Assembly (NCBI GenBank): GCA_964019335.1 | Contig: OZ025694.1 | Span: 372,001-436,000 of the forward strand | DNA: 64,000 nt | Reading direction: 5' to 3' | Origin: Diplonema japonicum | Lineage: Eukaryota > Protista > Euglenozoa: Diplonemea | Part shown: positions 30,046 through 63,185 of the stretch, piece by piece | Position numbering within the stretch: the stretch's first letter is position 1 | Layout of the letters: each line of letters begins with the position of its first letter | Position numbers and translations under genes: made by a program | The notes under the pieces: model-generated | Database searches by the model: none | The model's input: only the letters and a program-made list of their open reading frames with translations | Told to the model about the DNA's origin: nothing

Positions 30046-31219
30046 GAGGCAGCAACAAGAAGGGAGCGGAAAAGTGAGGCAAGGCTGCGATAGGCTTCAG
30101 CAGAAGACCATTCTTCGCATCAGGACGGACAGCGCAGAAGCCACGGGAGTTGAAGGAGGAAAGACCGCGTGACAGTCCATGATTGTCTGTTTAGTTTTGA
30201 GTTAAATCTTGAGTTTTCTTTTTGTTCCTTCCCCCATGCTCTGCTTCTTCCCTTCTCAACACGACTCAATCACACATCAGTGAACACTTTGATAAAAGAA
30301 AAAGAAAACACACAACTACTGCAAAAATGGAAAGAGAAATGCCTTTACCCCAGCTCCTTGAGAAGTACAGGAAAGGGGAGCGCCTCGGGGGAGGGGGCCA
30401 GGGGTCGGTGTTCAAGGCGGTGAGGGTGGTGGACGGGAAGGAGTTCGCGATGAAGTTGGTAGAGGCGGCGACGAAGGAGGAGCACGAGAGGCACGTGAAG
30501 GAGGTGGTGAACATGCTGCAGCTAAAAGACGAGAAGGTGGTCCCGTGCTTTGACTACTTCGGGACGACAAGGGAGCTGGCTGCTGGGGTGACGCAGTGGG
30601 AGCTCCACATCGTGATGCCCCTGTACACGGGGGACCTGCAGAAGCTTCTGGAGAGGGAGGGACCGCTCTCTCGGGAGATGGCAGTGAACCTCCTGCGAGA
30701 GATAGCGGAGGCGCTTGCCTACTTGCACGGGAAGGGTTGGATTCACAGGGACGTGAAGCCTCAGAACATCATGGTGGTGTCGAAGAACAACTCCGAAGGG
30801 AAGACTGGGTTCGTTCTGGCCGACCTGGGATTGTCGAAGTCTGTTGTTGGTGCAAGTGGTAGCAGCAGCAGTCTTTCTGGAGCGACCGCCAACAGCATTG
30901 TGGGGACCCTTCCCTTCATGGCACCCGACTTTCAAGGTACATCGTACACCAACAAGGTGGACATGTGGGCCCTCGGGGTGACGGTGTGCCTCGCCGTTCT
31001 GGAGAATGAGTGGCTGAGGGAACGCTTCCTGAGGTACCTGAAAATGAACCGGGACCTTGTGATGGGTGAGCTGGAAGAACGCCTCCCGAAGCTCGTGGGG
31101 GAGTCTGTGGGGACCTTGCTTCTGCGCCTCCTCTGCGTGGACCCTTCGGAACGCCCGACCGCTTTTGAGGTTCTGTCTGTGGTGGGGGCTGCACCGGTGT
31201 GTGTGGTGGACCCTTCGAA

Positions 31220-31310
31220 GGAGACAGCTGCACCTGACGAGACAGCTGTACCTGACAAGACAGCTGTACCTGACGACGCAGCTGTACCTGACGAGGCAGC
31301 TGTACCTGCG
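31220..31310 (+). repeat. 18-nt coding minisatellite, 5 units ((E/K/D)(T/A)A(A/V)PD) in kinase linker
   Basis: CAGCTG(C/T)ACCTGAC repeated with 18-nt period. Confidence 0.85.
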
Positions 31311-31934
31311 ATGACGAAGAAGGTGTTGACGATGGTGCTTCTGGCCTTCGCGGACTTCGGTGGCGAGGAGAGGAAGAGGCTGCTCAGTGTGGCTGTGGGG
31401 TAGGGTGTGGAGGAGGTTCGGGTGGCGGCGGAGGAGGCCTTCGCAAAGGACGGGCTGGGACGGGTTCGCAGGGTGGAGGTCTTCAACAGCGACTTCGATC
31501 TGTTCGTGGATGCCGACAGCGAGACTGTTTTCAAAGACAAGGAGAAGGTGAAGGTGTACCCGGAGCACAAGTTGAACATGATGGACGCGAACCAGCTCGT
31601 CTCAGATGAAGAATTCAAGAGGAAGGGCCTCGTTGCGGAGTGGGAAGAATTCGCGGAAGTGCTCTTGAGAAAGATGCTGGTGCAGGTGAAGCACGACGAG
31701 CTTGGGTTGCTTACCCAGCTGAACAAGGAACATCCACCGTGCTTGGTGATTGACTTCACAGGGGCTTCCCTGGTTCATGTGGAGGAGAGGTACGTCCCCA
31801 TTGTGACTCGCTTTGAACATGTGGTGCTGAAGGGCGTGCAAGGCGACATCGCTGATGGCTTCTTGGGATTCGGAAATACTTCGCGGCTGAGGTCACTCCG
31901 TGTCTCTCTCGACTCCACTGTTTGTTCAGGGTTC

Positions 31935-32534
31935 GTCACCAGCATCGGCAATAGATTCTTGGCTTCGTGCACCTCCCTTCAGGCCGTGGATCTCTCACCT
32001 CTTTCCAACGTCACCAGCATCGGCAATGAATTCTTGTACAGGTGCACCTCCCTTCAGGCCGTGGATCTCTCACCTCTTTCCAACGTCACCAGAATCGGCA
32101 ATGGATTCTTGGCTTCGTGCACCTCCCTTCAGGCTGTGGATCTCTCACCTCTTTCCAAGATCACCAGCATCGGCCATGGATTCTTGGATTCGTGCACCTC
32201 CCTTCAGGCTGTGGATCTCTCACCTCTTTCCAAGATCACCAGAATCGGCGATGCCTTCTTGATTTCGTGCACCTCCCTTCAGGCCGTGGATCTCTCACTT
32301 CTTTCCAACGTCACCAGCATCGGCAGTGAATTCTTGATTTCGTGCACCTCCCTTCAGGCCGTGGATCTCTCACCTTTTTCCAACGTCACCAGAATCGGCT
32401 GTGGATTCTTGGCTTCGTGCACCTCCCTTCAGGCCGTGGATCTCTCACCTCTTTCCAACGTCACCAGCATCGGCAATGAATTCTTGTACAGGTGCACCTC
32501 CCTTCAGGCCGTGGATCTCTCACCTCTTTCCAAG
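31935..32534 (+). repeat. 8 x 75-nt near-identical LRR units (VTSIGxxFLxxCTSLQAVDLSPLSN)
   Basis: Exact 75-nt period from 31935; units 2 and 8 identical but for the last base. Confidence 0.95.
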
Positions 32535-32822
32535 CGTCTGGGGAGAGGCCGCATGAAGCTCTCAGACATTATCGAAGTAGGCTGGAGGACGAGTTAAAGA
32601 GCATCAAAAGCTATCCCAGCCCCGAAGGGTGGTACCTCTCCACTTTTACCTTCTACAGGACCACAGGGGCGGCTGAGGCACTTATGATTTAATCAGAATC
32701 CCGAGATCCCATCCCTGCTCCCCAAATAGAGAGTGTACCATCCTGTTTCTCGCGGAAACAGAAAACCTACCCCCCACCACAGCAGCCGACCGATCAGACA
32801 CAACAATATAAAAAAAGAAAAT
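32535..32822 (+). mobile_element. 3' end of an Ingi/I-like LINE with A-rich tail, abutting the last LRR unit
   Basis: 32667-32797 (GGCGGCTGAGGC...TCAGAATCCCGAGATCCCATCCC...ATCCTGTTTCTCGC.GAAACA...CCACCACAGCAGCCGAC) matches 63871-64000, the 3' UTR of a CCHC LINE fragment. Left boundary at 32535 is inferred. Confidence 0.65.
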
Positions 32823-33143
32823 AAGCCCCCCCCCAAACAAACTTTTCCCCACCCTGATTACGTGATTAAGAAAAGAAAAAAAAGGGAAAAAAGGAAAGTG
32901 GTGAAAAAGTGTAAAGTGTCAAAGAACTAGCAAAGCTTGTGGAATGAGAACTACCAGGGCAACCAGGTGAGCGTCTCGAGACACTTCCAACCCACCTTGT
33001 GGGTGCGGCCTTAGCAAGTCGAAAAGAGAGTAAAATTTAAAGGCTTTTTTGGGGATTTTCCGAAGAAGGTAGCACGGGGTAGCTAGTGAGCACCAACCGC
33101 ACCAAAACCTATCAATATTTTATTGAGTGTCTTTTTTTTTTTT

Positions 33144-33540
33144 GCGGGCCGTTGCTAACCACTTCGTTTCTATCATGGTGAATTTTTAAATACAACGGAA
33201 GGAAGATTTACCAGAAGTAAAAAGCTCTGGCGGATTGGAAGTTTTTTACTTCCTGTAATTTATTGTTTTACAGTATTTCTTTTTCTGCCCCCCTCCCCTG
33301 TGAGGCCTATGGGTGTGGCACGCCATGTCTGAAACGTACAGCTCCCTTGAAGCTCACACCAGTGTGCGAGTTTAGCCCATTTTATTTTGGCACGTTGGCG
33401 ATGGCTGTGGTGGTCGTTGCAAGAGCGCCCATAGGTAGTATTGGACGATTCAGTTGACAGAATAGTTTTTTTTTTCTTCTTCAGTCCGAATTTCCAAGTG
33501 AACGGTGAGCACCCACCCGCACTCCGAAACCTTTGAAAGG
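33144..33540 (+). mobile_element. Stack of short elements: family B (33144-33182), a TTGTTTTACAG|TA MITE end (~33190-33273), family A (33288-33466), family G end (~33498-33540)
   Basis: Each matches other copies in the window (10281, 40681, 13350, 12455). Confidence 0.65.
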
Positions 33541-33555
33541 TTTTCTTCTTTTTTT

Positions 33556-34348: not shown

Positions 34349-37300
34349 TTAAGGAGGGCTTTACAAACGGACTGGATAGACGCCGCTGCATTCTGTGCTC
34401 GGAGGGATGGAGTACAGGTAGAGAGCACACTTGTCAGAACCAATTGCAATACGCGGGTTGATAGGGTACTGTTGAACAACATCGCGGCCCAGGGGCTCGA
34501 GCATTGCGGAGTAAGCGAGGCTATCTCCGGGTCGGACCACCGATGCCTGTCGGTAACACTCAACATCCCAGCCTTTCGACAAGAAGTCCTAAGATACACC
34601 GTCCCGCAGGAGATACCAAAGACCAAGAAGGCGCCAGTCGGAATAGCGGAGACACTGATGCAGAAGTCGAGGTACCGTGAGTTCATTGCAGCACAGAGGC
34701 CAACCGAAGCTTTCTCAGAGATATCAGACCTTGCGGAACAATACTTACTACATGGGTACATGGGACCGGTACGCAACGTATACACCGGGAGGGGCAACGA
34801 GGTCAGAGCTGAGTGCGAGGTCAACGGAGTCGGCAGTCGGGGCGGCAACAAATCGACAACAGCGGCTTGAGAAGTTGAAGCTCAAAATTCGAAGTGCAAA
34901 ACAGCAAATGTTGAAACTCTATGAGGGTGGACACTGCGGGCCGCTCCCGGTGGAGATACGGAACGCGCTCAGAAACATTAACGACGCTAGGGGAAGAGCT
35001 GAAGGTCGAGTTCTGCAAGATCGACGCGACAGGGAGTATTGATAGCATCAGGGGGGAGCTTGAAATAGCTGAGGACTACTCCCAGGGAATGTTGTCGGAG
35101 CTGCCGCAAGAACATGCAGGCGAAAGCATACGAACGTTCAATACGCTCTGATTTTGGGAAGGAGCGCAGACACATCACAGCCTGGATCAAAGACCACCCA
35201 AACCAAAGGACAGATGTGGTTGAGACGGCAGATGGTGGAGTGACCGCAAACCTACGGAAGATGGACGAGGTGATGCGAGACGCTTGGTCGGGCGTCTTTT
35301 CTGCACGGGCACCAGAGGACGAGCCACAGTACGAACGATTTGCACAGCGCTACGGGAACATGATCAAGAAAACCCTAATGTCGCGTACTTCGATCACAGC
35401 GGAACAGCTGAGGGAAGTGATCAAGAAGAAGCCGGACAAAGGGGCCTGTGGCGTGGACGGTTGGCGGATGAGTGAGCTGAAACGTCTTCCGGTGAGCATC
35501 CTGAGAGCTTTCGCAGACCTCTTCAACCTGATTGAGGAGACAGGCCAGTGGCCGAGACAGATCACGACAGCCCTGGTGTCACTGATTCCAAAGGGTGAAG
35601 GGTCAGCTCCTCTGAACCACCGACCCATCACGGTGACCAGCACCATCTACCGCTTGTGGGCGTGTACGAGGCTGAAGGGTGTCCTTGACTGGCAGGAACG
35701 TTGGATCACGCCGAGACAGCACGGGTTTAGGCCCAAGCACAGTACGACGACAGCCCTCATGGAACTGTGTACCAAGCTGGAGCTGGCTTTGGTGGATGGG
35801 GAGCCGCTGGAGGGACTGGCCCTGGATTTTAGAAAGTGCTTCGACCTGGTGCCACAACAGCTGTCCCTTGACCTCATGAGCGCCCGGGAATGGACGAATC
35901 TATAGGAAGAGCACTCCAAGGGATGTACTCCCAGATCACGAGGAGGTTCAAGTACCCCATAGGAGTTGGTGACACGTTTGAGGCCACAAACGGTATCCTC
36001 CAGGGGTGCCCGCTGTCGGTCATCATCATCAACGCCTTGCTGTCCATCATGATACGGGCCGTCGAGCAGGTAGCGCCGGACGCCGAGGTGCTAGCATATG
36101 CCGACGACGCCTATCTGTTAGCGAAGCTGCGGGACTCACTGCAGGCAGCGGTCGAAGGGACTCTAGAGTTTTGCGACCTGACGGGGATGCAGGTCAACGA
36201 GGAAAAGACGGTGGGCTTTGGCACCGCGGAAGGGTTCAAGTCGAGAGTCGTGGGAGACCGAACGGCGATGAAGAAAGGCTCGGAAGTACCTGTACCATAC
36301 AAGACGGTGTCGGACCTCAAAGGGCTTGGCGTGAAAATCAACACGCGCAGGACAGGGACGAAATGGAACAAACCGACCGCGAATGCGCTTGACTCGCTAG
36401 ACCGGCTGGGTTGCACGAGGTTAGCCTTCGAGACGAAAGCACACATGGTCAGCACGACGATTCTTCCGTCATGCCTCTACAGCGGACCGTTCTCCCCCCC
36501 ATGTGACGAGACGCTCAAGAGTGTCGACAAGGGTAACATGCAACCTATGGGGCCCTCACCACCGTGGACGCTCTCCTACCGCAGTGAACACAGTCCTCTT
36601 GAAGGGGCACACTAACGATCCCCTCTCCTATGTGATATACCACTCCCTGAAGGTGGTGTCCGGAGCGCTCGACGACGAACGACTACGACAGAGATGCATG
36701 CGGATCGCTGCGGGGTACGGCACGGGGTCCACCCCGATGGGACCAGTAGGCAACCTGGTCTGTCGGTGGCTCCCCTATATAGGATGGAGCTGGGCGCAAT
36801 TGCTAGACTGTGGGAACAAACCCTGGGCCGAACGCGGACACGTCTTTAGGGACGCGGTGAGGAAAGCCCGGAGCAGGTCGCTGGCGAACGAGAGGAACAC
36901 AGTGAGAGGGATGGAGGCGGGAGCGGATCCCAAAACCAACCAACTATGGAAAACAGCCAAAGACCCGCTCATGTCCTACTGCCTGAGACGGGTTATCACC
37001 GGAGGGGTCCCCTACCTTAGCCCGCATGCAGGAACGAATCAAAGAAGCGTCCCCCTGGCACCAGAAGGTGACGGCACCGAAGAAGTCGAAGAGAGCATAA
37101 GCCAAGTCCCAACAACGACAGTATCACGCACACAAGGGTTCAGGTGCGACCTGTGTGAATCACCGTACCCGGACACGGTAACCCTACTCCGCCACCAACT
37201 CTACGAGTGCGCCTGCGCACAGGAAGAGCTAGCACAGGACGGCTTGGAACCACTGCGCAACAGGACAGGATGGCCTGGAATTGCACGCGATTCTGCCGAG

Positions 37301-38034: not shown

Positions 38035-38123
38035 GTAGTGGGGTAAGAGGCTCACCCTCACCCTTTACTCACGTGGGGGTAAAAAAAAAAGAAACGAAGA
38101 AAATAAAGGGGAGAGCAAAGAAA

Positions 38124-39038
38124 ATGTCGTTACAATTCCACACCAATTTCACAGACGCGGAGACAGACACAATGCAGATTGTGACAGGCGTGGCCAGCGG
38201 GGTGTCGCTTATAGGGAGCTTGTTTATCGCGTCCTGCTACATGAGGTTCGGGGGCAGCAACATGGAGTTGTTGCTGTGGCTCAGCATCTCAGACGTTCTG
38301 AGCGACGCGTCCACTATCGCAGCGCTGTTTGTGTCCCCGGACAACGAGCAAGGCTGCAAGACAGTAGGTTTCCTTGTGACCGCCCTTGACCTCCCTCCTG
38401 TCCTGTGGACGGGCTGCTTGTCGCTGTCGCTATTCATCACGGTTTTTCTCTCTGAGAAAACAGGCAAGAAGGGGGTTCAATATTTGTACTTTTACTTCTT
38501 CATCAGCTTCGGGATCCCTCTCGCCACTGCTGTCATAGCGCTTCTGAAGGAAGACTTTGGCGATTCAGGGTATGGGTTTTGCTGGATAGAAGACCCGACG
38601 GAACGACTGCTGTACTTCTTCTTCCCGCTGTGGGTGGTGATCTTCTTCAACTCCATAGTGTACTTTGTCGTGACTAGGGAGTACAAGAAGGTCCTCCTCG
38701 CAACGCAAGGTTCGCTGTCGGCCAACTCTTCTTCACGCGCGCACCGTCTTAAGTACTACCCCCTCGTCCTTGTGGTGACCTGGTCCTTTGGGACAGCCCA
38801 CCGGTTGGCGCAGGCGCTTGGCATCCACTCGTACCCGCTTGCCATTCTGCACATGAGCTTCAGCAGGCTGCAGGGCTTCTTCAACGCTTTTGTGTACTCA
38901 TCTGACATTGGGATCAAGCAAGCCCTCCCCTGCCTCGGCTCTCGCAGCGGCACCTCTTATGATGGGCTCGATACCTACATCAACGCCACCCACGAGGAGG
39001 AACGGGGTAATAGTGTTTCTTACAGTCTTGCAGAATAG
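38124..39038 (+). CDS. Seven-transmembrane receptor, Dictyostelium cAMP-receptor/GCR1-like family
   Basis: 304 aa from ATG 38124; seven hydrophobic segments; family motifs SLIGSLFI, WLSISD, LWTGCLS, GFCWI, RLKYYPLVLVVTW, LQGFFNAFVY; N-glycosylation sequon NFT near the N-terminus. Confidence 0.85.
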   Translation: MSLQFHTNFTDAETDTMQIVTGVASGVSLIGSLFIASCYMRFGGSNMELLLWLSISDVLSDASTIAALFVSPDNEQGCKTVGFLVTALDLPPVLWTGCLSLSLFITVFLSEKTGKKGVQYLYFYFFISFGIPLATAVIALLKEDFGDSGYGFCWIEDPTERLLYFFFPLWVVIFFNSIVYFVVTREYKKVLLATQGSLSANSSSRAHRLKYYPLVLVVTWSFGTAHRLAQALGIHSYPLAILHMSFSRLQGFFNAFVYSSDIGIKQALPCLGSRSGTSYDGLDTYINATHEEERGNSVSYSLAE

Positions 39039-48500: not shown

Positions 48501-51500
48501 AACAGTGCTCAGATCCTGACCAGCAGGCAACAAGCACTGGTGACTTCATCTGCTCGTGCCAAACGGGAACAGGAACTGCAACTGGTATGGCCGCCACCTG
48601 CGTCTTGGATGAGTGTCTCAGCAGTCCATGCGGCAGTCAGGTTTGCACTGACACCAACACTGACGCTGCTGCTTTGAGCGACTTCATTTGTTCATGCCAA
48701 GCACCTTCCACAGGGACTGCAACAGGAACGCTGGCGGTGTGTATGCTAGACGAGTGCCTTGCATCACCTTGCAAGGCTGCGCAGACCTGTGCCGACCCGG
48801 ACACATCGTCTTCTATGTTGCATGACTTCACCTGCACATGCAACAACGGTGTTAAGGCAACCGGAGGCAGTGCCACGTGTGAACTAGATGAATGTGCTGC
48901 TGACCCCTGCGGTGCTGGGCAGCGATGCTACGATCCCGATAAGATGTACACACAGCAGCATGACTATGTGTGCACATGCATCTCAGATGCCACAAGAACC
49001 CAAATAGATGCGCCTGCGCTGTGCTCTGTCGATGAGTGTGCTTCCAGCCCTTGTGCCGCTGGTCAGTCGTGTGTTGACCCTGACCATGGCACGAATATGC
49101 TCAAGGATTACACCTGTACGTGTGTCAATGGTGTGAAGGCCACGGGTGGCAGTGCGACGTGTGAACTGGACGAGTGTGCTGTCAGCCCATGCGCAATGGG
49201 GCAGACGTGCAGCGACCCGAACACAAGTTACATTGCTCAGCATGATTTTAAGTGCACCTGTGACAGCGACCTTACCGCGTTTCAAATCGCTGGTCCTGCG
49301 CAGTGCATCTACGATGAGTGCTCGAACTCCGTTTGTGGCACTGGACAAGTTTGTCTTGATCTGAATGTGTCAAAGCACTCTCTGAAGGACTTCACCTGTA
49401 CTTGTGCCAATGGCGTAAAAGCCACTGGTGGTGCTGCCACGTGTGAAATTGACGAGTGCACGAGCATCCCTTGTGGTGCTGGACAGACCTGCTATGACCC
49501 TGACACCAGGTACAACATGCAACACGACTACACGTGCACCTGTGACAGTGACTCGAGTATCACACAAGTTGACGGCCCTGCCACCTGTGAGAACGATGAG
49601 TGCAGCAGTAATATATGTGGGGCGGGCCAAATGTGCTTCGACCCCAGCAAGTCCCTTCGTTCTCTGAAGGACTTCACGTGCACATGTGCCAACGGTGTGA
49701 AGGCCACTGGTGGTGTTGCGACATGTGAAATTGACGAATGCATCACTGATCCTTGTGGTGTCGGGCAGACCTGCAGTGACCCTGACAAGAGGTACAACAT
49801 GCAGCACGACTACACGTGTTCCTGCATTCCCGACTCGAGCATCACACAAGTTGATGGTCCCGCCCTTTGTGAGAACGATGAGTGTAGCAAGAACGTGTGT
49901 GGGACAGGCCAGACGTGTTTGGACTTAAACACCTCGACTCACTCTCTGAAGGACTTCACTTGCCTTTGTGCCAATGGCGTGAAGGCCACTGGTGGCATTG
50001 CAACGTGCGAGTTCGATGAGTGCACGAACAGCCCTTGCGATGCTGGGCAGACCTGCAACGACCCTGACATCAGGTACAACATGCAACACGATTTCACATG
50101 CACCTGTGACAGTGATTCGAGTATCACACAAGTTGACGGCCCTGCCACTTGTGAGAACGACGAGTGCAGAAATGACATATGTGGAGCAGTCCAAGTGTGC
50201 TTTGACCCCAATAAGTCCCTTCGTTCTCTGAAGGACTTCACGTGCACATGTGCCAACGGTGTGAAGGCCACTGGTGGTGTAGCGACGTGCGAGATTGATG
50301 AGTGCGCAACGAATCCTTGTGGTGTCGGGCAGACCTGCAGTGACCCTGACAAGAGGTACAACATGCAGCACGACTACACGTGTTCCTGCATTCCCGACTC
50401 GAGCATCACACAAGTTGATGGTCCCGCCCTTTGTGAGAACGATGAGTGTAGCAAGAACGTGTGTGGGACAGGCCAGACGTGTTTGGACTTAAACACCTCG
50501 ACTCACTCTCTGAAGGACTTCACTTGCCTTTGTGCCAATGGCGTGAAGGCCACTGGTGGCATTGCAACGTGCGAGTTCGATGAGTGCACGAACAGCCCTT
50601 GCGATGCTGGGCAGACCTGCAACGACCCTGACATCAGGTACAACATGCAACACGATTTCACATGCACCTGTGACAGTGACTCGAGCATCAAGCAGGTTGA
50701 CGGCCCTGCCACTTGTGAGAACGACGAGTGCAGAAATGACATATGTGGAGCAGTCCAAGTGTGCTTTGACCCCAATAAGTCCCTTCGTTCTCTGAAGGAC
50801 TTCACGTGCACATGTGCCAACGGTGTGAAGGCCACTGGTGGTGTAGCGACGTGCGAGGTTGATGAGTGCGAAGCGAATCCTTGTGGTGTCGGGCAGACCT
50901 GCAACGATCCCGACAAGAAGTACAACATGCAACACGACTACACGTGCTCTTGTGACAGTGACGCAGCACTGTTCCAGATCGACGGCCCTGCCACGTGCTC
51001 ATATGACGAGTGCCAGGTTATAGGCTGTTCGACGGGCCAAGCGTGCAGGGACGAGAACATTTCCCGCCACTCTTTGAAGGACTTCACGTGCACGTGTGCC
51101 AACGGGGTGCGCGCAACAGGCGGGGATGCTACATGCGAACTGGACGAGTGCGACACAGCCCCCTGTGGCCCACAGCAGACATGTGACGACCCTGACCTGA
51201 GGTACACCGCGAGGCATGATTATATATGCAGCTGTGCAAATGAGACGGGCGTGAAGATAGGAGCGCCTGCAGTGTGTGAGCTGGACGAGTGCGTGAGTGC
51301 CCCGTGTGGGGATAGCCAGGTGTGCGAAGACCTTGATACGTCGATGAAAAGCTTGAAGGACTACGTCTGCACGTGCTCAAACGGCGTTAGTGCTGCAGGC
51401 GGGCAGGCGACCTGCGAGTACGACGAGTGCGCCATGCAGCCCTACCCGTGCGGCAACCCTGCACAACAGGAGTGCATCGACAGCAATACGTCCTACGTCT

Positions 51501-52030
51501 CTCGTCATGACTTCAAATGCATCTGCCGAGATGTCAACAGACAGCAAGTAGACGGCCCTGCTATGTGCTCAAAGAACGAATGCGAGGCGGCGCCTTGCGG
51601 CAAAGGGCAAGCGTGCATCGATCCAGTGCAGAGCTGGGAAAGCTTGAAGGACTTCACGTGCACGTGCAGCAACGGTGTGAAGGCGACGGGCGCTCCGGCA
51701 ACATGCTCGGAAAGCGTAGCCAACGAAACCTCCTCTGCCCCAGTACCTGGTGCCGGTGGTGTCCCGGAGGATAAATCGGACGCAGCAGAGGGTACCAACG
51801 ACGGTGACGGTGACGGTGACGGTGACCTGTGGTGGCTTGTTTATCTGTTGATCGCTGTGCTCGGTTTCATAATTCTCGCAGGATGCATTGTCATGGCCTT
51901 CATCTACAGCAGGAGAAGAAGCAAGCAGATTGACATTGGCACCTTCAACCAGGTGATTGCAGAGCAGGAGGCCGAGATGAGGTATGGTTCTCAGAACTCC
52001 GCGCTGGGCATGCAGTATAACCAAATTTAG
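42593..52030 (+). CDS. 3145-aa type-I membrane adhesin/receptor: signal peptide, Cys-rich N-terminal region with about four PAN/apple-like modules, ~46 tandem six-Cys EGF-like repeats, TM, short tail
   Basis: Signal MELPLGAFLVVLVLCNCGVVKA; PAN-like C...C......C..F/WT(Y/F/W) motifs; repeat DECxxxPCGxxQxCxDPx8D(Y/F)xCxC...GxxAxC; TM WWLVYLLIAVLGFIILAGCIVMAFIY then RRR; ends YNQI. Confidence 0.92.
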   Translation: MELPLGAFLVVLVLCNCGVVKADIYNNRDCRDWGPPQNKAEYPKWPYCNRRPGDGNTRYKFLTDAMPPADLPPYKCGKGLVLRHDADGIVCANYVLGDDYAGPCNDPTCCVKEVCTTYKCPKNWVLKPTADQISCLFGCGEDICCDPVKPVPKMNPAGLIFVDQDPKRFSFGGKVTILRAPDETDITEYRVYWGYSNMVRKVPSCGLKNPVSWNNVKWRSDKLLKKVKATGCDITFEIPMGTKPPPRDNTCTIMTDRQDRTTAGTDPCNPHYLIVAAWNENGEKPVMATNEQQVGPRHPISDYEEEFNLPCAEGGITMGHDIPAENDVVLGAWNSVETPADCAKLCREYSGPKGPCRYWTWAYPNKGRTAKTCWMESQILQKTHYGVRVVGPAVCPTRDGEKPTGKERPRCNRWIRKANQAPFANENNGRNKWIDKGHHWVQKPNLPDVPLGPYQNAEECQAICDMDMLCIGFTYMKRDVSDKWFHRCFMIRQDIGFKSNVFYDSWMCSREGMAPLLYGYTMNGNPFGYMKCSQAPSAEQQAKDVDCCAALCDADASCASFTFWADKKCQLFTSCTLQKVNKVEGCSYESCFDGYGAASYTKDTARMMSIVDKWPQAGGDGGLPITVQTNGGMDGVEVTCVAWREGKPVRPAVPTTALAIKAQASLSASYATGIVKDNLAEMLLTREEAAAWLDDGQKYTVRCSVDDPQPLGLPTYIDQTVESNFVKGFVLVGAGYCKTTSCSKAKAFVPKNAPYTLAACRKECVDHGTECTAFWYRNSDGWCHIKIDGCNYDKVKNDASVQCFRSATEPNPFVPGTDICEKSCTGTCAVKRQLGVYDRDSFIPLRQVCDESDECATGPCGMGQTCNDPNTAPSSLNDYVCSCDADPSVQATGAAAMCTVDECATSPCGAEQECNDPDMSNSSQHDYICTCKSDTSLTKVDGPAVCSKDECATSPCGTGQTCSDLTQGVANLKDYTCTCDNDPSTKATGAQATCELDECAASPCSADQECTDPNIKYSAQLDYVCSCKSDPSIKKIGTSATCSKDECASMPCGVGQTCNDANPTINSVKDYTCTCDNDPATKATGAKATCELDECTSSPCGADQDCTDPDTKYSAHLDYECSCKADSSIKKIGTTATCTKDECDTMPCGTGQTCNDPVPTINSVKDYTCTCDNDPATKATGAKATCELDECASAPCGADQECADPNTKYSSQQDFECSCKVDSSIKKIGTSATCSKDECDPMPCGTGQTCNDPSPTINSVKDYTCICDNDPASKATGAKATCEIDECIGDPCGVDQLCTDPNTKYSSQQDFECSCKDDQSVKKIGTSATCSKDECASMPCGTGQTCDDPSPTINSVKDYTCTCDNDLATKATGAKATCELDECASDPCGADQECTDPNMKYSSQYDFECSCKADPSVKKIGTSATCSKDECSSMPCGTGQTCNDANPTINSVKDYTCTCDNDPATKATGAKATCELDECTLTVSPCGADQECTDPNTKYSSQQDFECSCKADTSIKKIGTSATCTKDECISMPCGTGQTCNDPSTTINSVKDYTCTCDNDSATKATGAKATCELDECASGPCGADQECTDPNMKYSSQYDFECSCKADPSIKKIGASATCSKDECSSMPCGTGQTCNDPNPTINSVKDYTCTCDNDPASKATGATATCELDECTSAPCGVDQDCTDPNIKYSAHLDYECSCKADPSIKKIGTAATCTKDECDTMPCGTGQTCNDPVPTINSVKDYTCTCDNDPATKATGAKATCELDECASNPCGNGQDCTDPNTKYSSQFDFSCSCQTDGSIVKIGAAATCERDECTPTPCGVQQTCVDPNTSPKSLKDYVCTCSGDPSTTATGTQAICEHDECAVVPCGPAQLCTDGDKRKSSTSDFTCTCMNDMATVSIGKASVCVIDECSLSPCGSQACLDPDTRASKTSDYVCSCPGGMPSKVGGIATCSMGSVDECTTSPCGLQQCSDPDQQATSTGDFICSCQTGTGTATGMAATCVLDECLSSPCGSQVCTDTNTDAAALSDFICSCQAPSTGTATGTLAVCMLDECLASPCKAAQTCADPDTSSSMLHDFTCTCNNGVKATGGSATCELDECAADPCGAGQRCYDPDKMYTQQHDYVCTCISDATRTQIDAPALCSVDECASSPCAAGQSCVDPDHGTNMLKDYTCTCVNGVKATGGSATCELDECAVSPCAMGQTCSDPNTSYIAQHDFKCTCDSDLTAFQIAGPAQCIYDECSNSVCGTGQVCLDLNVSKHSLKDFTCTCANGVKATGGAATCEIDECTSIPCGAGQTCYDPDTRYNMQHDYTCTCDSDSSITQVDGPATCENDECSSNICGAGQMCFDPSKSLRSLKDFTCTCANGVKATGGVATCEIDECITDPCGVGQTCSDPDKRYNMQHDYTCSCIPDSSITQVDGPALCENDECSKNVCGTGQTCLDLNTSTHSLKDFTCLCANGVKATGGIATCEFDECTNSPCDAGQTCNDPDIRYNMQHDFTCTCDSDSSITQVDGPATCENDECRNDICGAVQVCFDPNKSLRSLKDFTCTCANGVKATGGVATCEIDECATNPCGVGQTCSDPDKRYNMQHDYTCSCIPDSSITQVDGPALCENDECSKNVCGTGQTCLDLNTSTHSLKDFTCLCANGVKATGGIATCEFDECTNSPCDAGQTCNDPDIRYNMQHDFTCTCDSDSSIKQVDGPATCENDECRNDICGAVQVCFDPNKSLRSLKDFTCTCANGVKATGGVATCEVDECEANPCGVGQTCNDPDKKYNMQHDYTCSCDSDAALFQIDGPATCSYDECQVIGCSTGQACRDENISRHSLKDFTCTCANGVRATGGDATCELDECDTAPCGPQQTCDDPDLRYTARHDYICSCANETGVKIGAPAVCELDECVSAPCGDSQVCEDLDTSMKSLKDYVCTCSNGVSAAGGQATCEYDECAMQPYPCGNPAQQECIDSNTSYVSRHDFKCICRDVNRQQVDGPAMCSKNECEAAPCGKGQACIDPVQSWESLKDFTCTCSNGVKATGAPATCSESVANETSSAPVPGAGGVPEDKSDAAEGTNDGDGDGDGDLWWLVYLLIAVLGFIILAGCIVMAFIYSRRRSKQIDIGTFNQVIAEQEAEMRYGSQNSALGMQYNQI
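45148..51707 (+). repeat. EGF-like repeat array (46-48 aa units) with 288-nt dimer and 564-nt tetramer higher-order periods
   Basis: Alternating A/B units with 288-nt period at ~45700-47900; near-exact 564-nt duplication (e.g. 49939/50503, 49992/50556). Confidence 0.9.
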
Positions 52031-53017: not shown

Positions 53018-53052
<35 letters not shown>

Positions 53053-53238
53053 GTCGTCATTGTTTACTCTCTCTCTCTTTTTTTTTTTTTACACCATTTT
53101 TCTCCCTCTCTATCTTTCTCGTTACTTAACACAATCCATCTTCTTGCTTCGTGCGTTTTTATATTTGAATTTTTAAAACTTTCCCTTTTTTTTGTCCCCC
53201 CCCCCTCACCATCATTTCTTTCGCAGGCATCTTTCAAC

Positions 53239-56200
53239 ATGCACACATCGCACCTCGTCCTCCTGGTGTGGATAGCAACATTAACAAGCGCTGAGGTCAT
53301 TGAGCTTAGGTTCACCACGAACACGTTCAGATGGAGTGAGTCAGGACACAGCTTCACGCCGACTGTGCACGCATCCTCAGGGGCGACCTGTGTTGCAGGG
53401 AGAGTCCACAGCCCTGATGGCGGCGATGTACACACTGTGACAGCCTCATGCCCCTTCGCATCGAAGGACTTAACCAGAGTTACCGTACCGGCACCAGGGG
53501 GGAACGGGTGGGCCATTCTTGTACTCGAGATCAAATTCAATGGAGCATGGTCGCCACTATGGGCCGTGAACCTCTCCCCACCACACGTGTCCACTTGGGT
53601 GGATGATGACGATCGCGAGCCACAGTACAAGGTCGGGATATGGGAAAGGCCTCTTATGGTGTTCAAGGCAGTCACAAAGACAAGCAGTGATGCTGGATCG
53701 GATTCAACATTCGTACCATATTTCCTGTCGCCGTCTGGGCAGTCTTGCAAGGGAACCTCCATCGTCTCCCCAAACAAGGGCGCCACCTATTGGAGTGCTG
53801 CGGCGTGCTTCACAGATTTGAGCCACGTTGAGATCCCCTCCCCGGGCAACGATGCATGGATCATTGAGTCTGTCCACCAAGCAGAGGGCACGGACACCCT
53901 TCAGCAGCTCGTCGCCATCAACGAGGTGCCACCCACATTGTCACCCTTCATCGATGGTGACTCTGGCCAGCAGTTCAAACGAGCTGTCCTGCGACCTGTC
54001 GTGTTCAAGGTGCGCATTGTCACAGAGAGCTTTTCTTCCTCCGAATCATCACACACTTTTGAGCCGCTATTCATCTCCAATACGGGAACTATCTGCCCGG
54101 GTACAGGCATTGCCTCCCCAGGGAGAGGGAGCAGCATCTGGTCATACGGTGCATGCACCTTCCCTGTGAGCGAGCTGGACCGTGTGGAGATCTCGAACAA
54201 GGGGGACGACGGGTGGGACATTAACTCACTCTTCGTTGAGATAGCACCAGGCATTCAGATTCAGTGGTGGGCTGTGAACGAGTCCCCTCCGAAGTACAGC
54301 ACGACAGTGGACGGCGACGGGGCCTCCCGCCACCGCAAGTGCATCTACAAGGTTCCTGATACTGAGGCACCGGACACTGATGCTCCTACTCCACTTCCTA
54401 CTCCTGTCCCGACTCCAGTCCCGACACCTGTCCCTACGCCAATCCCGACACCTATTCCAACACCAATCCCGACACCTGTCCCTACGCCAATCCCAACGCC
54501 CGTCCCGACACCTATTCCGACACCAGTCCCTACACCTATTCCGACACCAATCCCGACACCTGTCCCGACTCCCGTCCCGACACCTGTTCCAACACCAGTC
54601 CCTACACCTATTCCGACACCTATTCCAACACCTGTCCCGACTCCCGTCCCGACACCTGTTCCTACGCCAATCCCGACACCAGTCCCTACACCTGTTCCAA
54701 CACCAATCCCAACCCCTGTTCCTACACCAGTCCCAACACCTATTCCGACTCCTGTCCCTACACCTGTTCCTACGCCTGTCCCGACACCTGTTCCAACGCC
54801 CGTCCCGACACCTATTCCGACACCTGTTCCAACACCTGTCCCTACTCCAGTCCCAACACCAATCCCGACTCCTGTCCCAACACCTGTCCCTACGCCCGTC
54901 CCAACACCTGTTCCGACCCCTGTCCCCACCCCACTGTACTACATGGGGTGCTTCGTGGACGACGATGTGGACATGAGGGTGCTGGGGCACAAGGAGTCTG
55001 ACTCCGAGATGCTTACTACAGCCTCTTGCGTGGCGCGGTGCGAGGCGGCGGGGTACCCTTTTGCTGGGACGGAGTACTCTGTGGAGTGCTACTGCGGGGC
55101 GTTCGTTCCTCCGGTGACGGCCCCCGAGAAGGAGTGCGACATGGAGTGCAGCGGTGACGCTGGGGAGGTGTGCGGCGGGGTGCACCGGCTTTCCGTGTAC
55201 AAGGTGAAGGAGAAGGCGACGCCGGCTCCGGTGACAGAGGCGCCCGCCTCGCACACGGGGGGCTACAAGGGCTGCTTCGTGGATGTGATCTCTGACCGGG
55301 AGCTTCCGGTGCGGATGCCCGACTCGGATGCGATGACGGTGGAGACGTGCAAGGCGCTGTGCTTGGGGGAGGGGTACACTTTTGCAGGGGCGCAGTTCGC
55401 ACAGGAGTGCTTCTGCGGAGGGGTGCTGCCCGCGGGGGTGGCTCCCGAGCGGGAGTGCGACATGGGCTGCGCCGGGGACGCGGCGGTGATGTGCGGCGGG
55501 TCTCTTCGGCTGTCCGTGTACGCGACGAGCGAGAGGAGCACAGAGGCACCGGACACGGTGGCACCTGCGAAGCTTCCCCCTCCGCCGCCGCGCGCCCCGA
55601 ACTACCTGGGGTGCTATGCTGACGAGGTGGGGCAGGGGCGGCTGCTGAAGTCTCTGGTGGGGGACGAGCCCTCCAAGATGTCGCTCCAGCTGTGCATGAA
55701 GGCTTGTGAGGGGAGCTTCTTCGCGTTCGCGGGACTGCAGTTCGGGCGGGAGTGCTGGTGCGGGAACACGAAACCGGCGGACGGGTCGAGGCTGGCGGAC
55801 GACGCGCAGTGCGACATGCCGTGTTCGGGGCAGAGGGGGGCGATGTGTGGCGGGGTGGGAAAGCTTAGTTTGTATGAGAGCGTGAGGAAGGAAGAGCCCA
55901 AGGTGTACCTGGGGTGCTTCAAGGACGAGCCGGGGGCGAGGAGGCTTCCAAAGATGATCCACGCGGACGGGAAAGGGATGACTGTCGGGGTGTGTGTGGA
56001 GCGGTGCCGGGCGGCGGGGTACCGCTTCGCGGGGCTTCAGTTCGCGCGGGAGTGCTTCTGTGGGAACGGGGGCCCCGGGGTGGCTGTCCCGAACAGCGAC
56101 TGCGACATGGAGTGCCCTGGGAACGAGCAGGAGCTGTGCGGGGCGGGGGGCCGGAACTCCGTGTACCTGGCGGCACCACCAACACCAACACCTGCTGTCC

Positions 56201-56502
56201 CTCCCCTGGAGCCTGCAGGGTGCTACACCGACACGCTGTCCCCGAGGACACTCCCCTTCATGGCCTTCGACAACGACAAGTACCTCACGGTGGAGCTCTG
56301 CATCGGGATCTGCGCAGCGGCCGGTTTCCCTTTCGCCGGCCTGCAGGACGGGAACCAGTGCTGGTGCGGCACCCTCCTTCCCCCCTCCTCCGCCCTCGTC
56401 TTCTCCACAGAGTGCTACGCACCCTGCAGCGGCAACCCCGCTCAACGCTGTGGTGGGCCCTGGAATAACTTGATTTATCCTACCTCAAGGTCTGAGATCT
56501 GA
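53239..56502 (+). CDS. Secreted protein: three PLAT/LH2-like beta-sandwich repeats, (PTP[V/I])n linker, five WSC carbohydrate-binding domains
   Basis: ATG 53239 after pyrimidine tract and TTCGCAG acceptor (53226); signal [18 protein letters not shown]; three ~115-aa repeats with G.(D/N)(G/A)W.I motif; five GC(F/Y).D...C...C...FAG.(Q/E)...(E/Q)C.CG...C...C.G.....CG WSC units; no TM. Confidence 0.9.
54385..54933 (+). repeat. 12-nt coding tandem repeat, ~45 units of PTP(V/I)
   Basis: Direct inspection of the translation. Confidence 0.95.
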
Positions 56503-58177: not shown

Positions 58178-58214
<37 letters not shown>

Positions 58215-59764: not shown

Positions 59765-59844
59765 AGAAAAGCTACCGGACAGACAAATGTTCGGGTTATT
59801 TTAGCATCCGGGAGTTTGTCCGTCCGACATTTTTCACTTCACAG
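59765..59844. mobile_element. Orphan right end of a ...ACAG|TA TIR element
   Basis: CCGGACAGACAAATGTTCGGGTT...ATCCGGGAGTTTGTCCGTCCGACATT...CACAG|TA parallels 12025-12105. Confidence 0.6.
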
Positions 59845-59981
59845 TATTTTGTTTTTTTTTTTCCCCCTTCCTCTTAATTCTCTTAAGGCTGACAGGCCGC
59901 CAGTACCTCCCCAAACCTTTCCTGTTTCTCTTTTTTTTGGGTTAAAAGAAAAAAAAAAAAAAAAAACACACAAATAAAAAG

Positions 59982-60419
59982 GTGGTGACGGGAGGGGGTT
60001 ATTTCCCTATTTTCTTTTTCTTTCCGCATGTGGCTGAAACCCACGGTCCTGGCGCTGTTGTCAAGTACTGGTGGTGGGAGCAGCGCACACAAAAAAATGA
60101 ATCCGAGGACCTGATACAAAATGCCGCCACACTCTACCTAACTGGAATGGGGTGTGGATCGGTAATGGGAAAATACACAAAGCAGCGGAATAGCCGAATA
60201 TGGGCGAACGGGGAACGAAGAATGTACTGGGGACAGGACAGCCGATGGCACATCACCGACAGAGTGGGTGACGTGACCAAAAACCTCGGTTTAATCACTA
60301 GCGATGGACCGTTGTTGACCGGTCGGTCGAAGCCCCACCTCGGGCAGCTTCCGCACCAAGTGGACGAGTGGGACATCGTGGCGGGAAGACAGTGCTTCGC
60401 CAGGCAGGTTATGAAGTAG
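59982..60419 (+). pseudogene. Fragment of an uncharacterised Trp/Gly-rich domain
   Basis: Protein-like, GC-richer stretch (GKYT...WANGERRMYW...WHITD...KNLGLITSD...HLGQLPHQVDEW) lacking a convincing start; could be an exon. Confidence 0.35.
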
Positions 60420-60495
60420 TTGTTGTTTTGATTTGACGCCCCCCCCCCCCCCCCCTTTCCCCCCCTCTTTTTTTTTTACCGTATTACAAAACAAA

Positions 60496-60996
60496 AACCC
60501 TTGCATCGGGGCCTACAGGTCGGACAACCCGAACGGCTGGGACCCATGCTCCGGGAAGTACATGGACTGCCCGAACTGCAAGTTCCACGAGAACATCTTG
60601 GCGCAGAACTGCTCAGCGCAGCTTGACTGGTTGAAGAAGACCACGTCGCAGATCAACAAGAACGACTGGGTCATCGTGGTGGGGCACCACGCAGCATGGG
60701 AGATCAACTCCGCGGACCCCACCTCCGTCTTGCAGGAGTACGGCTTCTAGCTCTACATGAACGGGCAGACCACCACCCACGAGCTCAACATGTACACGGT
60801 GGACGGGAAGGGGGACTACATCACCACAGGGGCAGGCACTATGGTCGCCATCCCCGCAAAGAAGGGAGAGGAGGAAGAGAAGGTGGAGGAGGGTGTCGCC
60901 CCTCGCCCACACCCACGAGTACACCTGGTACCAAGTCGCTGGCTTCACCACCCACAGTTTCGACTCCACCTTCACCACCCTCACTACTAAGTTTGT
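60496..60996 (+). pseudogene. C-terminal half of a purple acid phosphatase/TRAP-type metallophosphoesterase, disrupted
   Basis: AQLDWLKK...DWVIVVGHH; GF*LYMNGQTTTH (decayed GHxH); YITTGAG; VAGFTTHSF; in-frame TAG 60748-60750 and a frameshift near 60900; N-terminal motifs absent. Confidence 0.7.
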
Positions 60997-61276
60997 GCGC
61001 AAAGGAGCGTGGCCTCTCTTGCGACCTATTGGCATGAGGCTCTTGGCTGGGTCAAGGGTGGGCATCGTTCAAGACGGGAATCCCAAAGATCACCCATTGG
61101 GATTTGACAAAGCTGATTCTCTTCTCGGAGTAATTTCAGGTCAGCTCTACTTTTTACAAACGTAGTTCTGTGTTTATTTCTTTTTTACAACTGTATTTTT
61201 GTTATTCGTTTTTCTTATCCTCTCCACCCCCCATTCTTAATCACTTCAGCTACCTGCACAACAACAACTACAAAGT

Positions 61277-63185
61277 ATGGATCCTTCGACACTTCAGAAG
61301 TACGAGCAAGGGGAGCTCCTCGGGTCCGGCGGACAGGGGTCGGTGTACAAGGCAGTGAGGAGGGTGATGGAGGTATCTTTGCGATGAAGGTGTTGGAGGC
61401 GCTCGCAGAAGAGGTGCACAAGAAGAACGTGGAGGAGGTGCAGCACATGCTGAAGCTGAAGCACAGGAACCTGGTTCCCTGCCTTGACTTCTTCGAGACG
61501 ACAAAGCAGCTGGCAAAGGAATCCCTTGCGAAGGTGTGGCGGGTTCAAATCGTGATGCCCTTGTACGGAAAAGGGGACCTCAACTCATGCGTTCAAAAGG
61601 AGGGACCCCTCTCTCCTGAGAGGGCGGACCGGCTCTTGCGGGAGATGGGAGGGGTCCTTCAGTACATTCACGGTGAGGGCTTCATCCACAGGGACGTGAA
61701 ACCCCAAAACATCATGGTGTCGGGGAAGGTATCTCCTCCTTCTGCGGCCAGTGTCGTTGGTGGCGGCTGCGGGGGGGAGGCAGAGTTCATCCTGGCTGAC
61801 CTGGGATGTCGAAGGAGGTGTCCTCCGGTGGGGTAGCGAGCACCAAAATAGGCACACCAGCTTACATGGCACCCGACATCTTAAACGTAGAGGACGACAA
61901 CTACACCAACAAAGTAGACATGTGGGCCCTTGGGGTGACTGTGTGCAACGTGGTGCTCCGAGAAGACCTGAGGAGTCTCTTTCTGAAGTACCTGCATCCT
62001 AACAGGGAGCTTGTGATGGAGACACTTCAGACCCACCTCCCCCCTGCCCTCTTCGGGGTTGTGCTCCGCCTCCTCTCCACCGACCCTTTGGAACGGGCCA
62101 GTGCAGCTGAGATGCTTCAGACGGTACCCCCTGGGATGGTTCCTCAGCCGACTGGAATAGTTCTTCTCGCGTTTGGGAGTGTTGATGGTGGAGAAGAGAG
62201 GAAAAGGAAGCTCTGCGTGGCTGTGGGAGCAGGAGCGGAGGAGGTTCGAGTGGCGGCAGCAAAGGCCTTCTCTTCGGGGGGGCAGGAGCTCCTCAGGGTG
62301 CGCAGGTTGGAGGTCTTCGACAAGGACTTCGGGGAGTTCGTGGAGGAGGACTACGGGGACATCGTGTTCGAGGACAAGGGACGGGTCCGTGTCGTGTTTG
62401 AAGCACCGCTCCCAACCACCGCCACTTCTTCAGCCACCTGTGACAGCAGCAACATGCCACCCTGCTTCATCCCACCTGCTGCGAACAACAACAACAACAA
62501 CAACACCACCCTCACAAAAGAGGAGGGGAGGCTTGCCTTGGTCAACGCTGTTTCAGAAGGCGACCTTGACCTTCTAGAGCGGGGTGTTGACCCTGGTGCA
62601 GCGGACAGCAATGGTTTCACAGCCCTGCACCGTGCAGCTGGAAACAACTGTGTGGAGGCTGTGGCTGCTCTCGTCTGTTCTTACCACCAGGACCCTGGTG
62701 TCAAAAGCAACGACGGTCGGACACCGCTTCATTCTGCAGCACTGAACGGCCACCTCGAGACCGTTAAATATCTTGTCGAAACTCGGGGTCTCGACGCAGG
62801 TGTCAAAAGCAACGACGGTTGGACACCGCTTCATCAAGCAGCACTGAACGGCCACCTCGAGACCGTTAAATATCTTGTCGAAACTCGGGGTCTCGACGCA
62901 GGTGTCAAAAGCAACGACGGTCGGACACCGCTTCATTCTGCAGTACAGAACGGCCACCTCGAGACCGTTATATATCTTGTCGAAACTCGGGGTCTCGACG
63001 CAGGTGTCAAAAGCAACGACGGTTGGACACCGCTTCATCAAGCAGCACTGAACGGCCACCTCGAGACCGTTAAATATCTTGTCGAAACTCGGGGTCTCGA
63101 CGCAAGTGTAAGCAACGACGGTTGGACACTGCTTTCTCTAGCCAAATTGAGCAAAAACCCCAAGCTGGTTAGTTATCTGTCATAG
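61277..63185 (+). CDS. Ser/Thr kinase - PB1/ubiquitin-like module - ankyrin array; two single-base frameshifts (~61365, ~61806), pseudogene or sequencing error
   Basis: MDPSTLQKYEQGELLGSGGQGSVYKAVR from 61277; FAMK...HRDVKPQN...ADLG in next frame; MAPD, DMWALG and the rest in ORF 61806-63185; both shifts repaired by +1 base in a short homopolymer. Confidence 0.8.
62697..63104 (+). repeat. 4 x 102-nt near-identical ankyrin repeats
   Basis: Units start 62697, 62799, 62901, 63003; GVKSNDG(R/W)TPLH(S/Q)A(A/V)(L/Q)NGHLETV(K/I)YLVETRGLDA. Confidence 0.95.

Follow-up and report, generated by a model that had tools for sequence, protein, structure and literature searches.

We examined a 64,000-nucleotide (nt) stretch of the Diplonema japonicum genome (assembly GCA_964019335.1, contig OZ025694.1, positions 372,001 to 436,000 of the forward strand), referred to here as the window and numbered from its first letter. 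Two related genes lie on its forward strand, gene 1 at 30327-32597 and gene 2 at 61277-63185 (Table 1). Each encodes a protein kinase domain followed by a common middle module of about 82 amino acids (aa), which leads into eight leucine-rich repeats (LRRs) of the BspA type in gene 1 and into ankyrin (ANK) repeats in gene 2, a layout that a preliminary description of this DNA had reported. It had also reported frame defects, and we found a TAG in gene 1 and two 1-nt deletions in gene 2. The window genes are best explained as copies in decay. They belong to a family of about 40 loci that has expanded recently, lies in tandem clusters and has so far been seen only in D. japonicum. Judged from their sequences, the intact members are predicted to be cytosolic proteins composed of an N-terminal Ser/Thr kinase, the ~82-aa beta-grasp module, a low-complexity linker and a tandem-repeat tail.

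Pfam analysis of gene 1 identified a Pkinase domain in residues 14-284 of the first open reading frame (ORF) piece (E 4.4e-44) and LRR_5 repeats of the BspA type (PF13306) in the second piece (E 1.4e-25, 90 bits, above the gathering score). The LRR array was delimited by Tandem Repeats Finder (TRF) as 8.1 copies of a 75-nt period with 90% matches. Beyond the TAG, the frame continues unchanged through the rest of the module, the inter-domain region and the LRR array. At the position of the TAG, gene 2 has an Ala codon, and the gapless alignment shows a sense codon there in every paralogue. A search of the genome with the module returned gene 1 as match C47:403335-403559, containing one TAG. The inter-domain region of the paralogue L029, used as a query, matched C47:403566-403940 (window 31566-31940) at 69% identity, together with about 15 other LRR-type members. 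The C-terminal cap that closes all intact LRR-type members is absent from gene 1 and was not found downstream in the window. At the DNA level, gene 1 is only 78-87% identical to the nearest paralogues retrieved.

The TAG was checked in public sequencing data. The results showed 0 differences from the window in 151-nt contigs covering 31282-31432 from runs X1, X2 and X4, and the TAG position was the same as the window in run X6, so that four public runs from three studies were covered. Read depth around the TAG was uniform and at the single-copy level in X2 and X4. The published D. japonicum assembly was made from PacBio HiFi reads (PMC13598402). Because the contigs of four runs and a HiFi assembly all carry it, the TAG is real, and an assembly error is ruled out by the identical contigs of X1, X2 and X4 and by the lack of any TAG difference in X6. 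The X6 contig, which covers window 31072-31432, differed from the window by four tabulated substitutions (the contig record counts six) and by one nucleotide inserted after 31096, with the TAG kept. This contig represents either another allele or strain of the gene 1 pseudogene or a close paralogue.

Gene 2 gave an Ank_2 match in Pfam (ankyrin repeats, PF12796/PF00023; E 1.4e-70, 234 bits, above the gathering score), and its core ANK array at 62697-63134 consists of 4.3 copies of a 102-nt (34-aa) period with 93% matches (TRF). We aligned the DNA of gene 2 with that of L031, an intact paralogue that is 98.5% identical over 1229 nt. The alignment placed the two 1-nt deletions at 61366/61367 and 61806/61807, and neither site is a long homopolymer. 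As D. japonicum has introns, introns were checked first as the source of the frame defects; they are ruled out by the collinearity of the TAG and by single-base deletions relative to a nearly identical intact copy. On this sequence evidence, the most fitting interpretation of gene 1 and gene 2 is that they are young pseudogenes.

Table 1. Features of the two kinase genes and the element between them (positions in the window)
Feature	Position	Strand	Evidence or remarks
Gene 1, first ORF piece	30327..31403	+	ATG 30327; kinase ~30366-31178; terminates at in-frame TAG 31401-31403
Gene 1, Pro/Asp-rich hexapeptide linker from kinase to module	31221..31308	+	18-nt tandem repeat, 4.9 copies, 91% matches (TRF)
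Gene 1, beta-grasp middle module, interrupted by the TAG	31332..31565	+	tblastn, 58.5% identity over 82 aa with gene 2 module
Gene 1, inter-domain and N-terminal cap region, specific to LRR-tailed clade	31566..31933	+	conserved (own-genome search)
Gene 1, BspA-type LRR array, 8 units x 25 aa	31934..32538	+	TRF; LRR_5; ORF stop 32595-32597
Degenerate non-LTR reverse-transcriptase remnant between the genes	35114..36612	+	two ORFs, shifted in frame, match RVT_1 (E 5e-5 and 4e-12)
Gene 2, kinase in three frames	61277..62120	+	Pkinase matches on pieces (Pfam); DNA alignment to L031
Gene 2, beta-grasp middle module, intact	62157..62402	+	AlphaFold2 model of 62148-62411; 43 genome matches
Gene 2, Ser/Thr/Asn-rich low-complexity linker	62403..62567	+	translation; paralogues carry same linker type
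Gene 2, ankyrin domain: N-terminal cap, repeat units, C-terminal cap, stop	62568..63185	+	Ank_2; TRF; unit table

The kinase parts of the two genes share 41-47% identity, and the modules share 53% over 58 aa (BLASTP, E 1e-11; tblastn value in Table 1). The preliminary description had assigned the motifs HRDVKPQN, DLG and APD to both kinases. HRDVKPQN and MAPD were found in both; ADLG is whole in gene 1, and in gene 2 the second deletion hits the codon right after its Gly. The repeat units differ in only a few codons, as had been noticed: LRR positions 14/15, 17, 20, 21, 24 and 25 of 25, and, in the ANK units, the residue preceding TPLH and positions 5 and 7/8 after T. The cytosolic prediction agrees with the hydropathy analysis, since no signal-peptide-like N-terminus or convincing transmembrane segment was seen in the family, and the maxima of the 19-residue Kyte-Doolittle profile are core elements of the kinase, module and LRRs.

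We searched the 62.5-Mb genome with the gene 2 module. The results showed 43 places, mostly within open frames of 587-1350 aa, so the family extends well beyond the two window copies; its size is given here as 43 or more module sites, or about 40 loci. Thirty short loci and 20 of 10 kb were retrieved, and 13 weaker module sites (C13, C100, C103, C85, C91, C61, C84, C80, C47:250613, C47:487773 and others) were taken by coordinates only. Local clusters were found on C31 (4), C68 (3), C105 (3), C107 (6), C60 (2), C116 (2), C1 (2), C52 (2) and C47 (at least 3). Pfam analysis of 27 family ORFs showed an N-terminal Pkinase domain in 24 (two without the domain start), a C-terminal kinase remnant in one and no kinase in two N-terminally broken pieces. 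The first 20 ORFs scanned all had the N-terminal kinase, and the further seven comprised four full or near-full kinases, the remnant and the two without. The tails were ankyrin in 15, LRR_5 in nine and other forms in three, namely about 35 phenylalanine-glycine (FG)-type Gly/Phe repeats with a Cys4 motif, three copies of a new 107-aa repeat, and an end directly after the module. The expectation of many paralogues with an N-terminal kinase and varied repeat tails was thus borne out, except that no tetratricopeptide repeat (TPR) or WD40 tail was seen. No nucleoside triphosphatase (NTPase) family appeared in the Pfam tables of the 27 family ORFs or the window genes, in agreement with the preliminary description.

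The Pkinase match reached 125-163 bits in all full-length members, above the gathering score and twice the PK_Tyr_Ser-Thr score. The catalytic motifs FAMK, HRDVKPQN, ADLG and MAPD are conserved in nearly all members; ADLG (for DFG) and MAPD (for APE) are near-universal, and the catalytic Asp is kept. By these motifs the family kinase appears to be a catalytically complete eukaryotic protein kinase (PF00069). It has no close subfamily, and its best solved relatives are CAMK1, GCN2, PKR and ULK1 (~E 1e-20).

To place the tails, we built a maximum-likelihood tree of kinase plus module with 28 rows, in which the pieces of the window genes were joined with an X at each break. The results showed that the LRR-tailed members form one clade (support 99/98). 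The forms with FG repeats, with the 107-aa repeat and without a tail each arise as a single branch inside the ANK clade. The two deepest-branching members under midpoint rooting, P0002 and P0126, are expressed and ANK-tailed. This placement indicates that the tail changed at least four times; with this rooting, ankyrin is the ancestral tail, with LRR, FG and 107-aa repeat each gained once and the tail lost once. P0002 and the standalone module protein P0001 are D. japonicum transcriptome proteins (EukProt EP01064), 100% and 99% identical, respectively, to loci of this genome.

Two of the unusual tails were inspected individually. In L008:607-3240 (G000:C31:312546-315785), the second gene of a tandem pair, about 35 'GFGT' repeats of the nucleoporin FG type followed by CxxC...CxxC stand in place of the ankyrins, and the FG tail had no Pfam match. 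In kinase and module this gene hardly differs from its ANK-tailed neighbour, indicating a recent swap of the tail. L040:4089-6356 (G000:C68:341668-344907) has one residual ankyrin unit followed by three near-identical 107-aa repeats, which had no Pfam match and are possibly a new domain.

The module was modelled with AlphaFold2 using the family alignment. The model has the order strand-strand-helix-strand-strand-strand (predicted local distance difference test (pLDDT) 83.4, predicted template modelling score (pTM) 0.75), and a ubiquitin-like beta-grasp fold is predicted from it. The top Foldseek match was the N-terminal domain of Trypanosoma brucei BILBO1 (template modelling score 0.77, E 5e-4). 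A VIA structural search, independent of Foldseek, returned 265 chains with Z of at least 5, and the listed top 50 were almost all ubiquitin-like folds. The plexin ubiquitin-like domain/RBD, BILBO2 (Z 8.9), the Ddi2 ubiquitin-like (UBL) domain, the Par3 N-terminal domain, UBX-L, the Cdc24p PB1 domain (Z 8.3), DIX and the ubiquitin-like domain (ULD) of protein kinase D (Z 7.5) were essentially tied at Z 7.5-9.2. The module sequence matched nothing in Pfam (to E 10) or among PDB sequences, and PB1 (PF00564) gave no match in 18 module sequences even at E 10. The label 'PB1-like' in the preliminary description therefore says nothing beyond 'ubiquitin-like fold', since PB1 ties structurally with other such folds and no Pfam PB1 match exists. 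In the module alignment, an acidic patch (EEDDGD) and a basic one (ERKRK) can be made out by eye.

In the PB1-bearing kinases aPKC, MEKK2/3 and MEK5, a beta-grasp domain controls pairing and activation. The ULD of protein kinase D (PDB 6RA0) is likewise a small beta-grasp domain in a Ser/Thr kinase chain. The beta-grasp domain is N-terminal in protein kinase D and the PB1 kinases, whereas here it is C-terminal to the kinase; there is no sequence similarity, and the kinase belongs to another group. The BILBO1/BILBO2 N-terminal domain (PDB 6SJQ, 7A1I), the best Foldseek match and second-best VIA match, is a euglenozoan ubiquitin fold that docks peptides and has a coiled coil behind it, as in the standalone diplonemid protein described below. 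It differs from the module, which is about 25 residues shorter, with only 10-16% sequence identity and no profile match, and the long partner-binding loop of BILBO1 (bioRxiv 10.1101/738153) may be absent from the module.

When 1.84 billion representative proteins were searched with a profile, the module was found in only six. One is a kinase-module-ANK protein and one a calpain-module-ANK protein, both from D. japonicum transcripts, and four are standalone proteins of 158-187 aa. In the standalone proteins the module comes first, followed by a helical heptad-like tail that is a coiled coil by eye only; they come from D. japonicum, Paradiplonema papillatum (KAJ9445313.1), Flectonema neradi and one ENA record. 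These proteins (P0001, P0003, P0004 and P0006) have a D. japonicum locus at G000:C58:162942-163564, no annotation beyond 'hypothetical protein DIPPA_07586' and a Cys C-terminus in two species. No relatives were found with the module profile among JGI metagenome contigs, and for the standalone protein the ESM Atlas gave only uninformative look-alikes, with scores of 0.78-0.80. Within the genome, the module also lies behind calpain domains at two loci, on C85 and C61. G000:C85:136791-140140 encodes calpain (Peptidase_C2), module and ankyrins, is 99% identical to a transcript and has one or more apparent introns near its 5' end (calpain type as in P0005). The ORF at G000:C61:223065-226719 has three separate calpain-region matches ahead of the module.

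These results show that the module is an independent domain and not a C-terminal extension of the kinase, since it exists both standalone and behind calpain. As calpain precedes the same module and ankyrins, the adaptor and repeat cassette serves a second enzyme. The module is thus a mobile domain; as a standalone protein it is old in diplonemids, and its kinase and calpain fusions have so far been seen only in D. japonicum. The standalone protein is likely the source of the module and is a candidate common partner.

We compared the repeat units within and among genes. Among 85 LRR units, positions 20, 21, 24 and 25 of 25 (the x's of IGxxFLxxC) had entropies of 1.8-3.2 bits, while F22, L23 and several further scaffold positions were invariant. 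The four variable codons gave dN 0.82 against a scaffold dS of 0.23 and a scaffold ratio of nonsynonymous to synonymous rates (dN/dS) of 0.49, in a rough Nei-Gojobori count with the variable sites picked after inspection, and the pattern recurs inside each array. The 85 units hold 52 distinct four-residue combinations, only nine of which are common to more than one gene, and all six combinations of gene 1 are unique to it. In the ANK units, variability is highest at position 5 after the T of TPLH and at the first residue of the pair that precedes GH, and either Trp or Arg stands directly before TPLH. The last two of these sites are among the positions randomised in designed ankyrin binders. 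Mean unit identity was 73-80% (LRR) and 49-88% (ANK) for protein and 84-90% for LRR DNA.

Arrays range from 3 to 25 units, and the long ones extend by duplication of three- or four-unit blocks. L047:2706-6338 and L046:2931-6335 (G000:C107, C6) have 21-24 LRR units in higher-order blocks, with the four-unit block DSEG-DSEE-NWKG-SRSR recurring three to four times in succession. The strongest repeat matches were LRR_5 at up to 258 bits in L047 (E down to 2e-77) and Ank_2 at up to 759 bits in L035. The hypervariable repeat positions, the copy number of 3-25 and the breakage of about a quarter of copies fit the birth-and-death evolution that the preliminary description had proposed.

The LRR rod was modelled with pLDDT 81, and its best structural match was the Bacteroides ovatus BspA-type protein 4FS7. 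BspA-like LRR proteins of Bacteroidota, Trichomonas and Entamoeba (LRR_5) have the same repeat type, with a Prevotella LRR protein as the second-best database match; unlike members of the family, they lie on the cell surface or are secreted, and they have neither a kinase nor a beta-grasp domain. Within D. japonicum, the rod is 48-55% identical to those of ubiquitin-like-head plus LRR (UBL-LRR) proteins P0127-P0129, which have the 25-aa BspA-type unit, the IGxxFLxxC variability and a beta-grasp domain joined to a rod. Their ubiquitin-like head is different, however, they carry no kinase, and the kinase-LRR inter-domain region is not common to both families. The ENA records P0127-P0131 all combine a ubiquitin-like head with LRRs of the same 25-aa unit type. 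We also considered whether the head of the UBL-LRR family is the inter-domain region of the LRR clade, and ruled this out, as that region gave only 28 genome hits, mostly the kinase family itself.

Kinase and ANK and/or LRR repeats are also combined in one cytosolic protein in LRRK/ROCO kinases and in the ankyrin kinases RIPK4/ANKK1, ILK and TNNI3K. In these the repeats are N-terminal to the kinase, and ROCO proteins have a ROC-COR GTPase and kinases of the tyrosine kinase-like type. In the present family, unlike in those proteins, the repeats are C-terminal to the kinase, and the kinase, which has no close subfamily, is of neither the ROCO/LRRK nor the RIPK type.

Other features of the window were also annotated. 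The surroundings of the genes, previously described as rich in long interspersed nuclear elements (LINEs), are only modestly so, with one degenerate reverse-transcriptase element at ~35.1-36.6 kb. No ANK or LRR fragments were found beside this remnant at 35114-36612. The remnant as the cause of the truncation of the gene 1 LRR array had no support, the missing cap being nowhere downstream in the window. Between the kinase genes lie a seven-transmembrane receptor-like (G-protein-coupled receptor-like) gene at 38073-39035 (Dicty_CAR, E 1e-15) and a gene at 53050-56499 for a protein with five WSC domains (E 4e-96). A 3145-aa ORF at 42593-52030 had no Pfam match. Two giant ORFs of about 2700 aa each lie on the forward strand at 526-8784 and 14958-23042 (GC 58-62%, GC skew -0.26 to -0.49), with long ORFs antisense to them at 1086-7802 and 15674-22066; the ORF at 526-8784 had no Pfam match. 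That both strands are open suggests long low-complexity coding repeats.

We tentatively favour the explanation that the family is a repertoire of ligand-directed kinases (and calpains) with variable tails. The repeat tail would form a variable protein-binding surface that selects the ligand, and the kinase, or calpain in the sister architecture, would be the output. The beta-grasp module would dock the protein to a common partner or pair two molecules, and pairing could activate the kinase in trans, as with the ubiquitin-like dimerisation domain in protein kinase D. The ligands would most plausibly be fast-evolving non-self or selfish-element proteins, the host being one that eats bacteria and houses two bacterial endosymbionts. 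The D. japonicum strain carries two Holosporales endosymbionts (PMC13598402; bioRxiv 10.64898/2026.01.29.702485). Binding, pairing, activation and any immune role are what we infer from the observed anatomy and evolutionary pattern of the family.

Several results weigh against this explanation. The two copies in the window are broken, and truncations or frameshifts affect about 7 of the 30 loci inspected. Kinase plus module dN/dS in the ANK clade ranged over 0.5-0.9, which is high for a working kinase, with several pairs at 0.7-0.9. Searches of 5.8 billion proteins, at lengths of 160-1435 aa, returned no near-identical products of the young ANK and LRR clades from the D. japonicum transcriptome set; only the older, divergent P0002 and P0126 turned up. 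Evidence for diversification is weak at the ANK variable positions (dN/dS 0.5-2.2), and at the LRR positions it carries the roughness and the choice of sites noted above. In the model, the variable LRR residues flank a short strand and do not lie on the canonical LxxLxL strand; an LRR binding surface is therefore assumed. On the other side, the mostly long intact ORFs, the intact catalytic motifs, purifying selection on the repeat scaffold and a median pairwise dN/dS of 0.49 for kinase plus module favour a working family.

The preliminary description had read the genes as candidate NLR (nucleotide-binding leucine-rich repeat)-analogous immune receptors lacking an NTPase, in which the PB1-like module is the oligomeriser replacing NACHT/NB-ARC and ligand binding clusters the kinases. 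In the full model, the repeats would bind a molecule of a pathogen or symbiont, and the clustered kinases would set off a defence response. This reading is partly supported, but as a full account we consider it unlikely. The effector-adaptor-repeat layout, the swappable tails and the swappable effector (kinase or calpain) agree with it, and so do the diversifying LRR positions, the signs of birth-and-death evolution and the acidic and basic patches of the module. The host has endosymbionts, and the kinase fusion was not detected in the protein set of the symbiont-free P. papillatum; this correlation, however, involves one species. Fungal NLRs (Dyrka et al. 2014, PMC4986451) are likewise cytosolic combinations of an effector, which can be Pkinase, with a repeat tail, and their ANK repeats show the same length variation, concerted evolution and positively selected positions. 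The differences are that NACHT/NB-ARC in fungi stands in the place of the 82-aa beta-grasp domain, that LRR tails are present here and were not found there (PMC4986451), and that the family here has no known link to cell death or allorecognition. Unit identity, at 65-88% (amino acids), lies mostly under the 85% criterion of 'high internal conservation' used for fungal NLR repeats (PMC4986451). The oligomeriser itself is called into question by the lack of any PB1 match and by the structural tie of PB1 with many ubiquitin-like domains that do not oligomerise. The family falls outside NLR/STAND (signal transduction ATPases with numerous domains) proteins because it has no NTPase, with only 82 aa and a linker between kinase and repeats.

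Ordinary signalling kinases offer another account, in which the tails and module target paralogues to host substrates or cytoskeletal sites as part of the diplonemid kinase expansion, with no recognition of non-self. The diplonemid node shows a strong expansion of protein kinases (PMC10161547), the module is matched best in structure by a trypanosome cytoskeletal docking domain (BILBO1/BILBO2), and kinase plus repeat architectures are common, with TPR- and WD40-tailed kinases among the protein search matches. The older, expressed P0002 and P0126, moreover, have ordinary, non-homogenised ANK repeats. Nevertheless, homogenised units with few hypervariable positions, arrays of 3-25 units, 52 combinations and a quarter of copies broken would be unusual for housekeeping targeting, and the fusion family was not detected outside D. 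japonicum. We regard this account as improbable.

More doubtful still is a largely non-functional family, in which segmental or transposon-associated amplification spread a kinase-ANK gene, the young copies are mostly silent and drifting, and the hypervariability comes from unit shuffling and relaxed constraint. In its favour are the broken state of the window copies and several others, the high ANK-clade ratios, the lack of near-identical transcripts among public proteins and the retroelement remnant close by. Most copies, however, still have open frames of 600-1350 aa with intact catalytic motifs, and LRR-clade kinase pairs have dN/dS of 0.27-0.5. Drift alone is insufficient to explain purifying selection on the repeat scaffold (dN/dS 0.4-0.5) combined with four LRR codons that run ~3.6-fold above the synonymous rate.

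The repertoire of ligand-directed kinases remains our preferred explanation. It can be extended, in a form that we think has a rather low probability, to an NTPase-free intracellular recognition system with kinase or calpain output, a lineage-specific beta-grasp adaptor plugging all receptors into a single conserved 'adaptor plus coiled-coil' hub protein, and a hypervariable ANK/LRR sensor for endosymbiont, prey-bacterial or viral proteins. Together with the UBL-LRR family, this would amount to an independently evolved protist repertoire for immunity or symbiont surveillance.

We found no published description of the kinase-module-repeat family; the D. japonicum genome paper (PMC13598402) does not mention kinases, and that of P. 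papillatum reports general kinase expansion only (PMC10161547). Little is known of intracellular self/non-self discrimination in free-living protists, and the known NLR/STAND repertoires of plants, animals, fungi and bacteria are organised around an NTPase switch. If the proposal is true, a ubiquitin-fold domain in the middle of the receptor would be a different receptor design, in an abundant marine lineage and in a species with two bacterial endosymbionts. Should no immune role exist, the results still provide a new domain family whose standalone form is conserved across three species of diplonemids, an unambiguous example of recent domain shuffling (kinase and calpain heads; ANK, LRR, FG and new-repeat tails), and a set of natural putative ANK and LRR binders with their variable positions mapped.

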